From NCBI GenBank assembly GCA_977017575.1, contig CDRNVI010000030.1, forward strand, positions 124,001 to 188,000: a DNA stretch of 64,000 nucleotides, read 5' to 3'. Both the position numbers and the translations under genes were made by a program. The notes beneath the pieces were generated by a model that saw only the letters and a list, made by a program, of their open reading frames with translations, was not told the DNA's origin and did no database searches. Of the stretch, positions 5,118-26,615 are shown in pieces (position 1 is the stretch's first letter; every line of letters begins with the position of its first letter). The DNA comes from Paramoeba atlantica (lineage: Eukaryota; Protista; Discosea).

Positions 5118-5499
5118 CGAGTAATCTTTATGAAATCTGAATTCGCATGAAAAAAACGACGTTTTTGAAAGAATAGTGCTTAAAAGGATTTGCGTCGCAA
5201 AATTGAGTCATGTAAGATACAGGGGTCCCACCATGGGATTTTCACCCCTGTATATCACATCGTGTATTTTTTTTTGCGCTCGATAGATCTCGTTCCCGTA
5301 GCGCAGAGTCTTGTCACAATTCCCTTGCACACCTTGGACTCAATTTGTGGGAAATTACTACAAATTACTACAAGACTGCTACAAAAAGAGAATACAATGT
5401 ATAAACAACGAAAAGGATGAAATAAATCACGAAAGAGAAGTAAACGAAAAACATGAAGTGAAGTTTATATCAATTTCAAAAGTCATGCACCTTTTGTAC

Positions 5500-5965
5500 C
5501 CCGCAGTCGAATGACAGTCGTTGTGTGCTGTTGAGCGCGATACTTGATGTTGACATACAGTTCTCTGTTGTTCACAAGATTTAATTCCATTAATTTCTTT
5601 GGTAGGCTGTCCAACTGCACCATCCCTGAAAAATTGTTGTGTGAGCAGTTCAGAAATTCAATACTCGGAGGTAGACGATTCAATTCGAGTGTTCCGGTGA
5701 ATGCGTTGCGCGACAAACCAACCGTAGTAATAAAGGCCGGAAGACAGCTGAGATTAATCTCCCCCGAGAAGCTGTTCCGCGAAACCAGAAAGGAGCCCAT
5801 ATTCTGCCCTAAGCTAGTCAGATCTACACTATCCTCGAAATCGTTGTCATCCAAAGCGAGCTCTAATGTATTTGATAACTGATTTGCCTCGAACTTAATT
5901 CGCCTTCGAACAAAAATTTATTGACTTCAATAATAAAATGTGTAAGGTCAGACGGCAGCATGCGC
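5500..5965 (-). pseudogene. LRR gene C-terminal half, frameshifted
   Basis: LPSDLTHFIIEVNKF then a frameshift into LALDDNDFEDSVDL...LPKKLMELNLVNN; no N-cap. Confidence 0.8.
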
Positions 5966-7117
5966 CACAGTACTACCCCCGGTCACTTCATTATGCGGCA
6001 CCTTAAATTCACGTACTGTGGGTAAAAGATAAGACTAAAAGATAAGACTATTGTGGGTACTAGTACACAGGAATTCATCCTCCTCTTCTCATTAATTTCT
6101 ATAAATGACATTGCCACAGAACTCTGCTGTCTGGATTGTAGTACTATTCTATTATTGAAATACGGGTACCTGTGACATCAATCTTATTTAGTAAATGCGC
6201 GGGAAAATTTGACTTTATCAACTCACCCTCCAAATCTTTGTTCCACTCCAAGTAAAGCCCGTGTAGCGATCCTGGAAGCTGTGGAAACGCCACATGACCG
6301 GAAAATTGATTATTATTTAAGCGCAGCACTTCCAGTCCATCGGCAAGCTTCCCCAATCTCGGTTCACCTGAAAATTGATTGTGCTGCAACAACAGCTGCT
6401 TTATACTTCCAGGGAGCTTTTCTAAACACACAGATCCGGTAAATCGGTTCCGAGATAAAATCAAGGACGCGGTCCTGTTCGGAAGCAGCGTGAAATCAAT
6501 GCCCCCGGAGAGTCTGTTGTTATCTAAATCGAGCACGACAAGGTGAGCCGGCAGCGCTACCAAAGAAATCTCTCCGGAGAAGGCATTGCGGTAGAGATAC
6601 AAACTCTCGATAAACAACGGCAGGGAACCCAAGTCGAGTGTTCCGGTAAAATCATTATTACTTACATCGAGGAATATCAATTTACGGGGTAAGTGATCCA
6701 GCGCCACGGGGCCGCTGAACGCACACGTTTCCACAATCACTGTACAGAGGGAGTCGGGGAGTGACGAGAAGTCGAGCTCTCCGGTGTGATACGATTCTCC
6801 GTTCCAGTCGATGATTTCAACCTCGCCTTGCGCGTTGCATTGGTGAGTCTCTAGATCGCCATTTTTCGTCGCAAAAAAATACTCACAGCGACTCACAGCG
6901 ACTCACAGCGATTCACAGAAACCTACAGGTACTCAAAGTTTTTGCTATTCCTTTGTGACTTTCGGTTTTTGTTTTTCGATTTTTTTGACAGAAATAAAAA
7001 TGGTAAAGCAGATTTATACTCAGTGTTGTAGACCTTGTGTTCTAAAGTCATTTAGTATAGGAATAGAGTTTATCTTCTGCTAAACGTTTTTCTTGAAGTT
7101 TTTCTTAATCATAAGTG

Positions 7118-7909
7118 ATGGCTGAACTTTATGTGCGTTTGCACTGTTTTCACTGCGATAAGGTTACTCAGTTCCGTGCTCGGACTCCTTCCTCTTGCCT
7201 TGATTGCGGCAACGAGCACACTAATGAGGAATGCACCTCACTTGAAATGTGCGGCCATTGCTCCGAGTTTTGCGTGCCTGTTGGCTGCAACATTTGCCCC
7301 TCTTGCAATAAGCCGCAAGATCATCAAACCTTAGGTCCTGAAGTTGTGGCAAAGTGTGCCAAGCGTGGGTTGGACCAAAAGAGAGTCCAGGAAGCATGCT
7401 GTGTCTACGAAGGGTGGACAGTATGCCAACGGAAGTTGACATTCGCACTTGTGGCCCAAGTACTTTGCATTATACAGCGAAGCTTTACTGTGGGAAAGTC
7501 GAAAGTGTATCGCCGTGCGGCAACTTCCGTATCCGAATATTTCCGTCGTGAGCTTCCCTCTGCAGACGTCCCCGTTCTATCAAAGACGATGCGCCGCATT
7601 TGGACAACCTACAAGGGAACTGCTGCCAAGAGTGTTAAGGAGCAAAGGGAAGAACGAATTGCTATGATCCATGATCAGATTGGAGACCTGCTTGAAGGAT
7701 ATACAATCCGTCGTGATCGTTTGTATTTGGCTAAGGATGCCATTTTCAGCGGCGCAGAAACGCCGGATGACCTTTTCTCCGTTCTGTGCTCGTTGAAAAT
7801 CTTGTTGCCGAAAGCCAAAGATGGAGATTTCAAGTTGCTGCATGTTCAGAAGAGCAGAAAGAGAGCTAATTTGGACATTGAAACTGAAGTTGAAGTGATT
7901 ACTCTCTAA
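7118..7909 (+). CDS. Transposon accessory protein with four CxxC pairs (double zinc ribbon) and a helical C-terminus
   Basis: CFHC, CLDC, CGHC and CPSC lie in the first 64 aa; intact ORF inside the TIRs, upstream of the transposase. First ATG at 7118 (the ORF track starts at GTG 7115). Confidence 0.8.
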   Translation: MAELYVRLHCFHCDKVTQFRARTPSSCLDCGNEHTNEECTSLEMCGHCSEFCVPVGCNICPSCNKPQDHQTLGPEVVAKCAKRGLDQKRVQEACCVYEGWTVCQRKLTFALVAQVLCIIQRSFTVGKSKVYRRAATSVSEYFRRELPSADVPVLSKTMRRIWTTYKGTAAKSVKEQREERIAMIHDQIGDLLEGYTIRRDRLYLAKDAIFSGAETPDDLFSVLCSLKILLPKAKDGDFKLLHVQKSRKRANLDIETEVEVITL

Positions 7910-8090
7910 AAAAGGTTGGTTTAAAGGAACAAGGGGATACGAAGTAAGTTTCGATATTTATGGTTGCTCACTTATAAATATTTTGATACAAATTAATTTT
8001 GCGCGTATAAAGCTTAAGTTACAGTTCATTGTAATTGGTACAACTGCATAGTATTATTTATAGCTTTTCTGCCATTGTTTCTCTTTTTTT

Positions 8091-9113
8091 ATGCCCTCAG
8101 AACTCTCTCCTTGTGGACTTACGCACGCTACATACGACTACTTGCGAAAAATTGGTTACGATGAAGAGTTAATTTTTGCCTCATTTTTGTTTCTCCGCAC
8201 AGGGGGGCACTATGACACTGTTGCAGACCACTTAACCGCAAAATTTGGACGCGGTTGGTCTGAAAGCACTTGCAGGGCAAAAATTCCTGAATTTTTTGAA
8301 ACGTTGTACCGTGAGCTACAAGGCAATTGGTTAGTTTTTCGAGACGATATTCTCTTACATGAAGCGAATACAACGGATGACTTTTTTTCTAAGGATATTC
8401 TTCTCGCCCTTGACACCGTTCCAATTTATGTGAGATCCGCGGATAGGTGTTTTCAGCCCAAATATGCAGATCATGTCGTGAAAGCCGCAGTGGGGTGCAC
8501 ATTCTCAGGATATGTGTGTTTCTTCCCCGAAAATCTGTATACCGGTTCCACCCCTGACAACAACATTCTTGAGCACACGAAAATCACAGATATTCTTAAA
8601 ATTCATAAAATAAGGTGCCTCGCCGACGGCGGATTCAAAGGGTGCTCAGAAGTGATCCGTCCTTTTACTAAGACCCAAATATGGCCATTAAAGAGGCTTC
8701 TTGGTCAAACAGAGCAAGATTACGAAGATCAAGCTGACAAAAAACTCGAATTCAATGAGATGGTTGCCCATTACCGGTCGAGGGTAGAGCACCTTTTCAG
8801 TAGTTCAAATGGTGTAGGCCGATGGACAGCCTTTAAACATTGGAACAAAGATCTGAACTGTACTCTATTCTATGCATTTGGTTCTTGCCTTATCGTTCAG
8901 AATGTTGAAATGTTCCTTCGTCATCGAGAAAAGGGTAAGTATAAACCTATTAACGAAGCTGGGAAAGCATTGTTGGTGAAGAAGTTCAAGGAGCACAAGG
9001 CCATGTCATCAAGGTACCCCAATCCTACGACGCGGAGTCCTTGCGCGGAGTTTCAGTCAACTATACCTACGTACTTCTCTCGGAAAAGAAACGTGGAAAA
9101 TAATACTCAGTAG
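8091..9113 (+). CDS. PIF/Harbinger/IS5-like DDE transposase (DDE_Tnp_4-like), 340 aa
   Basis: HTH-like LFLRTGGHYDTVADHL...SESTCR; catalytic motifs LALDTVP, CLADGGF and YRSRVEHLF. Confidence 0.88.
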   Translation: MPSELSPCGLTHATYDYLRKIGYDEELIFASFLFLRTGGHYDTVADHLTAKFGRGWSESTCRAKIPEFFETLYRELQGNWLVFRDDILLHEANTTDDFFSKDILLALDTVPIYVRSADRCFQPKYADHVVKAAVGCTFSGYVCFFPENLYTGSTPDNNILEHTKITDILKIHKIRCLADGGFKGCSEVIRPFTKTQIWPLKRLLGQTEQDYEDQADKKLEFNEMVAHYRSRVEHLFSSSNGVGRWTAFKHWNKDLNCTLFYAFGSCLIVQNVEMFLRHREKGKYKPINEAGKALLVKKFKEHKAMSSRYPNPTTRSPCAEFQSTIPTYFSRKRNVENNTQ

Positions 9114-9825
9114 CTATAAATAAATAAATAAAGCTTATTTCTCGACATCATACTGCATATTCATTTAACAACATTCCATTACCGCTTCTTTTCATTACCG
9201 TTCTTTTTGGGGTGCAGTCAGTTTGCTATTTCAATTGCACTTTGTTTAAATTGCTTTTGGACCAAACCTTTTGTTACTTTTACTGTTTCGAAAGCATGGA
9301 TATGCTAACCTCCTTAACCACCGATCTTTTGGGTGCCTCTTCTCGTCTTTCAGGCTCTTCCGAGGGAAAAAAATACCCACAGCTACTCACAGATACTCAC
9401 AGCAGCCCACAGCGACTCACAGAAATTTACAGAAACTCACACGTACCTACAGATACTAACTACATACTCACCATTGTATCCCGGACCACTCACACGCGGG
9501 GGTCTCGGCGCTCCACGAGGGTTTCTTTGCATTCACGTGTTGAACAAAATGAGAAAGGGTAAACTCCTGGGGAAGATTGGCTCTGCTCACCTTTGCGGCA
9601 CCCGAGGTTGAGGAGGGGTCATGAAATACGAACCCGACGGCAAGCATAGGATGAAGAGCAGTGATGAAAGGAATCGTATTTCGTTTGTATCTCAAGATAG
9701 TATCTCAAGACTATCAGGCATAGAAGGGATGGTACGAAAATATAGGGGGCGTCAAAATTTGTAAAACTCGTCCAATTTTGGAAAATAGCACCGCATTCGA
9801 GAGCTCTCATAGAGTAACGTGTCAA

Positions 9826-25229: not shown

Positions 25230-26615
25230 TTAAAATTGGAAAACGCCCTTTGGTACAGTGTATTCTATCTCTATGTCATTAATGCGCGTAATCTCTGTAT
25301 CATAAATCTCTAGATATAACGGATTTGGAGTCTGGGTCAAAAGGCTATTCTTCACCTCACCTTGAAGTTCTTTATTACAACCCAGGCATATAGCGTACAT
25401 AACTGAAGGTAATGAATCCAACTCTACCCAGCCTGCGAACCGATTTCCGTTGAGATTCAAATAAGATAGATTTGGTGGGAGTCGACGTAGACCCGGAGTT
25501 CCCATGAAGGCATTGTCATTTATCGCTAGGAACTCAAGATTTAGGGGCAGACGGCCCAAATCGACGTTTCCTGATAGTTTATTACACGAGAGTTTTGATG
25601 TTCATGCGCTCGTTGGCGCAGAGATACAGCCCTTGATGCGACAGCCGATATCATCGGCACAATCCGTATTGACGGATGTCGCACCAAGGGGGTTTAGCTC
25701 GGACTCTGTCGATAGAGGGGGTCCAGGCAACTCGCCCTCTCTTTACGCAGCCGGAGGGGCGCACTGCAACCGACTCGGTCCCAGTCGGTAGAGGTGGTCC
25801 AGGCAACTCACCACCTCTTTACGCAGCCGGAGGGGCGCACTGCAACCGACCGCTGCCTCGCGATAAGACGAGGCAGAGCCACGCCCAGTGGTCCTCAAGG
25901 GAGGCCACCATGGCGCATAGCTCCCCGGGAAGAAAAGGGCGCGAAAGGTAGAAAGCCGGGGAGGGAAGAAAACCCACTCAAGGAGTGAGCCGGGGAGGGG
26001 TGATGGGGTGGAAGCGCGTCCCCTACTTCGCCGAGAAAGAGGGACAGTTTCGGCCTTAGTGCCGGCCGGCAACGGGCATATAACAGTAAGACTATGCCCG
26101 TTGCCGGGGAAAGAAAAGATGAACTAAAGAGAAAATGTACCAACAAGGTACAGAAACTGTATCTTTATATTACCTTTATATTATCTTTATATTAGCAGTC
26201 GCAAAGTTTGCGGTAAACATGTCAAATCGATTGATCCAGTGAAAATATTTTTGGTAAGGTCAATGATCGTAATTGCAGGAGGCAAGTCCTTGAAAGGTAA
26301 TTCCCCACTAAGTTTATTGTATTGAGCACGAATTTCGAGCACTGAGTGAGGGAGAAATTTCAAACAGATATGACCCTCCAGTTCGCGACCGGCCCACTCG
26401 AGCTTAGATGTTTTATTTCCCTCATCACATATCACATGATACCACTCACATGCCGGCGTGTTGGTATTCCAAGAGGGATCGGTATTTCCGACGTCTTTGA
26501 TAAAGTTTGCAAGTTCGTATTCTTGTGGGACGTTGACACCACGAATCCGACCGGTACGTGACGATGTAATGTCCTCAGCCGTACGCAGGATATGTGAAAA
26601 TGCTCTGTGAGGCAT
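25230..26615 (-). pseudogene. Subfamily A LRR gene split by a 597-bp insertion
   Basis: Removing 25594-26190 restores TLRLLILSCNKLSGNVDLGRLP in frame. Confidence 0.9.
25594..26190. mobile_element. Unclassified 597-bp GC-rich insertion without TIR or TSD
   Basis: Ends defined by the split LRR gene; about 73-bp internal tandem duplication; perfect 15-bp stem 26066-26080/26093-26107; related partial copy inverted at 28045-28270. Confidence 0.75.

Follow-up and report, generated by a model that had tools for sequence, protein, structure and literature searches.

A probable Pangu-like, two-gene Harbinger-type transposon inserted in a leucine-rich repeat gene of a kinetoplastid-type protist genome

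The element, its ends and its target sites

The 64,000-nucleotide stretch analysed in this study (the window) corresponds to positions 124001-188000 of contig C30 in the genome assembly G000 (45.7 Mb, 248 contigs), and it contains a leucine-rich repeat (LRR) gene which is split by a 2631-bp transposon with two open reading frames (ORFs). The element spans positions 6842-9472 of the window (G000:C30:130,842-133,472), starts with GGTGAGT and ends with ACTCACC. These terminal inverted repeats (TIRs; left 6842-6848 and right 9466-9472, both given on the plus strand) are perfect over 7 bp, and 13 of 17 bases are matched if they are extended imperfectly, on the left side to about position 6858; the left terminus is the same in all copies of the element and the right one was defined by copy comparison. 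Copies of the triplet ATT flank the element exactly (6839-6841 and 9473-9475), as it was established by direct reading, from the restored junction and by the comparison of copies. The boundaries, the 7-bp TIRs and the exact ATT duplication had all been claimed in a first-pass annotation of this DNA, and direct reading gave the same values.

Both genes are open and lie on the plus strand, in agreement with the two intact, co-oriented frames of that annotation. ORF1 (7118-7909, 792 nt) encodes a putative helper protein of 263 amino acids, in which two CxxC...CxxC zinc-ribbon motifs are followed by a helical core, while ORF2 (8091-9113, 1023 nt) encodes a 340-amino-acid DDE_Tnp_4 transposase with its catalytic residues at 8412-8414 (D108), 8625-8627 (D179) and 8787-8789 (E233). 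The interrupted host gene is on the minus strand: its 3' part occupies 6144-6838 and has LRR_1 and LRR_4 matches, and its 5' part, recognised from the ORF and the restored junction, occupies 9476-9695 and encodes an N-terminal cap ending in ...CEWSGIQ. Excision of 6842-9475, that is of the element together with one ATT, turns the two host ORFs into a single minus-strand frame of 309 codons, which crosses the junction as ...PACEWSGIQCNAQGEVEIIDW... and continues into the LRR_1/LRR_4 repeats; the in-frame restoration proposed for the host gene was reproduced in this way. An Rfam scan of the window gave no match.

The left tip is backed by six 10-bp units at 6879-6938 (plus strand; consensus ACTCACAG plus two bases, written in full as nACTCACAGn), of which Tandem Repeats Finder (TRF) recovered 6881-6918 with a period of 10. 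About ten units of the same motif (9373-9471, plus strand; TRF period 10, 9.8 copies) reach into the right terminus. Since all the units are on the same strand, the two arrays are direct and not inverted repeats, and the inversion is confined to the terminal 7 bases. A pyrimidine-rich tract ending in AG, read directly from the sequence at 6940-6991 (plus strand), lies upstream of ORF1 and is a possible trans-splice acceptor.

A six-frame search of G000 found five further copies that can be aligned over the whole length (bases 1-2631) with 98.3-99.1% identity, and degenerate copies and copies with internal deletions came from a search at the DNA level, which makes about six long copies and about ten derivatives in total. 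The same two terminal bases bound every copy, and the ends of the element are not due to chance, because six further copies stop at identical bases. After merging the copies with identical flanks 12 independent sites remained, with both ends visible at nine of them. The duplicated triplet is ATT at seven sites, AAT at four and ACT at one; it is preceded by C at 10 of the 12 sites and followed by G at five of the nine. It was clearly demonstrated by these sites that the target is A-N-T, with C/ANT/G as the preferred context. Comparison with the other copies had been recommended in the first-pass annotation, which gave ANT targets for the Pangu group; all 12 independent sites proved to be ANT, and ANT targets are indeed those of Pangu (Han et al. 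2015, PMC4482050). The flanks in the window would also permit a 5-bp CATTG duplication with 6-bp TIRs, nevertheless this reading is ruled out by the copies on C4, C12, C44 and C8, since sites such as cAAT...AATa contradict it.

The two proteins and the related families

ORF2 matched the Pfam family DDE_Tnp_4 (PF13359) with E=4e-10 and 39.9 bits (cut-off 24.8), and the assignment to the PHIS/Harbinger group, made in the first-pass annotation, holds because of this match. D108, D179 and E233 are invariant in an alignment that includes 31 distant relatives besides the three sister families, and 53 residues separate D179 from E233, in line with the spacing of about 53 noted before. With these residues the catalytic assignment of ORF2 was established. 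An AlphaFold model built from the alignment of relatives (predicted local distance difference test, pLDDT, 92.8) places D108 in a beta strand, D179 just past a strand and E233 within a long helix; its best matches in the PDB were ISCth4, the P element, Mos1 and retroviral integrases, all of them weak (best E=3e-3). ORF2 is a DDE transposase of the RNase-H fold with no close relative among the solved structures.

A word-index protein search with ORF2 alone returned only ORF2 itself, and the same kind of search with a 35-sequence alignment returned only ORF2 and one of the input sequences. A profile made from the four families of the genome, run against 1.84 billion representative proteins, gave 148 matches at E<=1e-3, including 56 at E<=1e-30. 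Twenty of the 148 were looked up: all came from metagenome or read assemblies of ENA, JGI or Logan, and among these 20 there was no informative name and no NCBI or UniRef record. The neighbours of the transposase in the ESM Atlas were generic eukaryotic DDE_Tnp_4 clusters. The ENA metagenome assembly ERZ24900291 has a contig (ctg4007l) which matches the window; the transposase gene on it is identical, and so is the set of genes around it. When 35 full-length transposases were placed in a tree, the four families of G000 formed one supported clade (96/94), and therefore they diversified within the lineage of this genome.

ORF1 was less easily placed. Pfam offered nothing credible, only a sub-threshold match to DUF4914 (E=0.14, 10.7 bits, cut-off 25.7), and no match was obtained in PHROGs, NCBIfam, the ESM Atlas or the sequences of the PDB. 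Its model is moderate (pLDDT 66, with 75-93 in the core); Foldseek found nothing with it, and the VIA-wide fold search stayed at noise level (best Z 5.2). There was no Pfam match to Myb, SANT or MADF, and Myb, trihelix and SANT folds scored only Z 3.5-4.2, within the noise, so that a cryptic Myb/SANT-type fold could conceivably be present. Full-length homologues of ORF1 (26-31% identity) stand just upstream of the transposases in the three sister families of G000, and weaker homologues with shared motifs precede related transposases on the unrelated metagenome contigs L077 and L078, invariably just upstream and on the same strand. ORF1 is not a chance ORF, because its homologues accompany related transposases. 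Among its CxxC...CxxC pairs the second set (C45, C48, C60, C63) is invariant and lies within the motif C-P-x-C-x-x-P-x-D; D68 and W162 are also invariant, the latter in the motif R-N-x-W-x-x-Y of the helical core. As judged from its sequence, ORF1 is most simply read as a conserved helper with zinc-ribbon cysteines, which stands in place of the usual Myb-type partner.

The three sister families have the gene pair of the element, and their transposases are 38-45% identical to ORF2; the TIR and the 10-bp unit differ from those of the element, family by family. Same-orientation 10-bp arrays stand at both ends in the element's own family (A), in families B and C and in the metagenomic relative L077, each with a unit of its own, and among the sisters this architecture of the ends is common to B and C. 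Family B (L011) has the TIR GGACCC and the unit CCACTATGGG, and its insertions are at ANT in five of six sites and have the C...G flanks in all six; family C (L017) has a 12-bp TIR (GGAGACTGTGCA) and the unit TTGGCATGAA. The TIR and target-site duplication called for family D (L015), a 7-bp match and TTT, do not exceed chance and were set aside. L077 (1618-4503; JGI 3300048919, Ga0496116_0017939) is a GC-rich relative with a transposase of 32% identity, a 9-bp TIR (GGAGACAGG), the unit AAATTCCnnn and a CAT (or CATG) duplication; it shares the architecture of the arrays and interrupts a mitochondrial-carrier gene in frame.

Non-autonomous derivatives retain the ends and the arrays alone. A 127-bp miniature inverted-repeat transposable element (MITE) on contig C34 (L067 1001-1127), flanked by an AAT duplication, is the shortest form in which both ends and the arrays are kept. 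In it the left tip, a spacer and two units are fused to the right array; this is exactly the structure to be expected if the left array had recombined with the right one, which has the same orientation. The other derivatives are a 432-bp form and an ORF1-only form of about 1.35 kb, and the ends of the MITE-like derivatives are 94-100% identical.

At G000:C21:764933-781357 and at the end of C110 (L073, L074, L076) there are at least ten tandem copies with a period of 1995 bp; the repeated unit includes positions 210-893 of the element, in which ORF1 is truncated (197 aa) but still open. The array stands at the end of a contig, with an orphan left end 5 kb upstream of it. This is a fragment of the helper gene amplified as a tandem array. 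A 1047-bp derivative (G000:C10:33663-34709, L066) has a foreign interior with hairpin-forming repeats (TTCGATGAATATTCATCGAA), which may be a nested insertion of a hairpin-ended family.

Host genome, mobility and alternative explanations

The character of the host genome was examined through several markers. KMP-11 (PF03037, E=5e-43) is encoded twice in G000, on contigs C2 and C12, both of which bear these transposons. A 21-mer that resembles kinetoplastid spliced-leader sequence occurs 209 times in G000, seven of them on C30, as against none in the control. The assembly has one type of small-subunit (SSU) rRNA, of about 2.1 kb. The KMP-11 genes, the 21-mer and the SSU type fit a kinetoplastid-type protist. 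There was no candidate in G000 for the paraflagellar-rod family PF05149, which reflects either a search miss or an organism without this structure. The 21-mer is dispersed over most contigs, and this suggests a dispersed repeat carrying the spliced leader, or a retroposed copy of it, and not a tandem spliced-leader array. Within the window a spliced-leader-like sequence (26100-26200, minus strand; ...CAGTTTCTGTACCTTGTTG/GTACATTTTC...) adjoins the end of an LRR ORF and has no Rfam match. Complete ribosomal DNA units are about 100 kb apart on each of C149 and C177, and do not form a tight tandem array. Several paralogous plant-type LRR ORFs (LxxLxLxxNxFxG) are present in the window, at 5483-5854 and 6144-6896 (minus strand), and at about 26200-26350; at least two of them are interrupted by mobile DNA, so that insertion into arrays of LRR genes seems to be frequent.

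It is very probable, in our judgement, that the element is a transposon of the PHIS/Harbinger kind which behaves like Pangu/Harbinger2 in a kinetoplastid-type protist genome. PIF/Harbinger transposons require both of their proteins, and in Harbinger3_DR the Myb-like partner interacts with the transposase and binds to a 9-bp motif in the subterminal region (PMC9710019). By analogy with these elements, and in view of its conservation and position and of the way in which the repeat units co-vary between families, ORF1, a zinc-ribbon and helical protein that co-evolves with the transposase, would bind the 10-bp units, whose phasing corresponds to one turn of the helix. ORF1 would then recruit the transposase to the short inverted tips, and perhaps also into the nucleus, like the Harbinger3_DR partner, and the transposase would cut the element and reinsert it with a 3-bp stagger at ANT. 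The same-orientation arrays would give the two ends a different geometry, and the element would easily collapse when one array recombines with the other. Both proteins could come in trans from different half-broken copies.

The copy in the window is the only one in which both genes are open. In the two copies on C26 and in the one on C59 the transposase is intact and ORF1 is broken by a 1-bp deletion, in the copy at C56:4276 ORF1 is intact and the transposase has 11-bp and 4-bp deletions, and the copy at C56:48707 has lost element positions 2075-2571. As the sole intact copy, that of the window may be active, and it is likely to be the current source of both proteins. Independent copies diverge by 0.9-1.1%, and the transposases of C30 and C26 differ by six synonymous and four nonsynonymous changes, the latter being below the neutral expectation, although the numbers are small. 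The description of the element as potentially active is reasonable on these grounds: it is the sole copy with both ORFs intact, the divergence of copies is about 1% and the changes in the transposase lean to synonymous ones.

Several observations weigh against a recently mobile, Pangu-like element. The same insertion is present on C56, in the form with the 497-bp internal deletion, with flanks diverged by 0.3-0.4%; the insertion is thus older than the split of C30 and C56. An empty site, which would read ...GCATTGTAT..., was sought in three ways, and none was encountered: in G000 the host flank is confined to C30 and C56, and the site is filled on both; the 24-mer of the restored junction, read off the window by hand, has no exact match in the JGI metagenomes; and among the homologues of the host LRR fragment, which are at most 38% identical, there is no empty site either. 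Consequently the insertion, described before as recent, was only partly confirmed as such, because no empty site was found, and the occupied site on C56 speaks against a very recent insertion. The perfect TIR is 7 bp long (13/17 when extended) with a GG start, shorter than the 11-40 bp reported for Pangu. In two relatives the 3-bp duplication is not ANT: it is AAG at one site of family C and CAT at one site of L077. DNA binding by ORF1 is likewise presumed, and its model, of moderate confidence (pLDDT 66), has no fold relative.

The family might be extinct, with the window copy as an immobile relic whose ORFs are open merely because too little time has elapsed. The failure to find an empty site, the broken gene in every other full-length copy, the insertion common to contigs that are 0.3-0.4% apart and the small size of the family (about six long copies and about ten derivatives) would all agree with this. 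We consider it unlikely all the same, since both ORFs are open, the copies are only about 1% apart, the ends of the MITE-like derivatives are 94-100% identical, and the synonymous excess in the transposase points to a working master copy under selection. It is still less probable that ORF1 is a passenger or regulatory gene dispensable for transposition. This would be in accordance with its lack of a recognisable DNA-binding domain and with fold matches at the level of noise, but ORF1 has been kept with the transposase across the families (26-31%) and the metagenomic relatives, always upstream and on the same strand, ORF1-only derivatives persist, and dependence on two proteins is the rule in PIF/Harbinger (PMC9710019).

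The remaining explanations concern the kind of element, and all three of them are very improbable. A canonical PIF/Harbinger, ISL2EU, Spy or Nuwa element would have the same Pfam domain, DDE_Tnp_4, and the neighbours in the Atlas are generic; yet the duplication is ANT and not TWA, AT, none, CWG or TNA, and Myb/SANT, THAP and YqaJ domains are all absent. Even more remote are the last two. An intron-generating element of the 'introner' type is brought to mind by the G/GTGAGT that starts both strands and resembles a 5' splice site, and by arrays rich in ...ACAG with repeated CAG. On the minus strand of the host, however, no AG near the far end restores the frame, as the candidates leave 11 or 13 extra bases; the motif belongs to a protein-coding autonomous transposon, and the termini of the sisters (GGACCC, GGAGAC) are unrelated to it. 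The introner reading fails on the missing frame-restoring acceptor and on these sister termini. A bacterial IS5-family insertion sequence (IS), acquired by contamination or recent transfer, would have ANT targets in common with the element (PMC4482050), and the sister transposases gave faint matches to NCBIfam IS5 models (12 bits, E ~0.08). Against such an origin, the element has two ORFs, sits in a eukaryotic LRR gene, has no NCBIfam IS model above threshold, and is multicopy on contigs that also bear KMP-11 and spliced-leader-like sequence.

Comparison with known transposon groups

Han et al. 2015 (PMC4482050) defined the groups of the PIF/Harbinger-ISL2EU-Spy (PHIS) superfamily by the composition of the target-site duplication. 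Pangu, which equals Harbinger2 of Repbase (PMC12730594), is described there with an ANT duplication, TIRs of 11-40 bp that start with AG or GG, and two ORFs, the partner having no known motifs; its 34 families include those of Chondrus, Ectocarpus and Phytophthora (PMC4482050). ANT-targeting Harbingers have also been noted in Ectocarpus (PMC12477816). The element of the window has the alignable DDE_Tnp_4 catalytic core of PHIS transposons, as well as TIRs (7 bp) with a duplication in the range of 0-3 bp (3 bp, at nine two-ended sites). As in Pangu/Harbinger2, the duplication is ANT and there are two ORFs with a partner that has no known motif. Set beside the published description, the element qualifies for Pangu on its duplication, its GG start and its gene content, and its perfect TIR is too short.

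With the canonical PIF/Harbinger elements (Harbinger3_DR, Ping/mPing) it shares two-protein cut-and-paste transposition with a 3-bp duplication, MITE derivatives and a helper thought to bind subterminal motifs. It differs from them in its ANT target instead of TWA, in its zinc-ribbon helper with no Myb/SANT/MADF signal and in its far shorter TIR; a TWA (TAA/TTA) duplication was seen at none of the 12 sites. The features of ISL2EU and Spy are absent from the element: it has neither an AT nor a missing duplication, and no THAP or YqaJ domain was found with Pfam. The duplications of Nuwa I and II (CWG, C/TNA/G), groups which have a Myb/SANT partner, do not occur in the ANT set of the family; the preference for flanking C...G resembles the context of Nuwa II, but the core differs. 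The DDE transposase of the element belongs broadly to the fold family of bacterial IS5, and, in the account of Han et al. (PMC4482050), ANT-type targets are common to both; unlike the single-ORF IS5 of prokaryotes, the element is eukaryotic, has two genes and matches no NCBIfam IS5 model at threshold.

In the searchable literature only Merlin has been reported among kinetoplastid DNA transposons, and trypanosomatids are described without class II elements (PMC8101967, PMC12278014). For this reason an intact two-gene Harbinger-type element with a minimal derivative of 127-432 bp would fill a gap in the kinetoplastid mobilome. It is a possible transposition tool for kinetoplastid-type organisms, and, being a compact system, it lends itself to the question of how a helper that is not of the Myb type recognises the ends of a transposon, and to testing how same-polarity 10-bp arrays with a 7-bp inverted tip specify the two ends.

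The resemblance to Pangu extends to the ANT duplication, the GG termini, the length of about 2.5-3.5 kb, the DDE_Tnp_4-type transposase of about 340-400 aa with a partner of 230-290 aa that has no known motifs, and the occurrence of Pangu in protists and algae. The host of the element, in contrast, is kinetoplastid-type, and the 20 sampled relatives include no named protein. The same-orientation 10-bp arrays and the zinc-ribbon partner are not mentioned for Pangu in the accessible part of its description, and the genes are head-to-tail, unlike those of the Ectocarpus Harbingers, which are tail-to-tail (PMC12477816). The lineage is possibly undescribed, as the first-pass annotation had put it; this is compatible with the deep search, in which the looked-up relatives were metagenomic and without names. 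More tentatively, the element and its sisters may be a separate undescribed branch of PHIS and not ordinary Pangu, with a zinc-ribbon helper, short GG ends, same-polarity arrays and the C/ANT/G target, in kinetoplastid-type protists and unsampled microeukaryotes; if it is so, no potentially active Harbinger-type transposon would have been known from a kinetoplastid before the copy in the window. The element also bears on the question whether ANT targeting was inherited or is convergent in Pangu, IS5 and its own lineage. What is new here is the conserved zinc-ribbon helper together with subterminal arrays that are phased and of the same polarity, in a group of hosts from which essentially no such elements have been reported.

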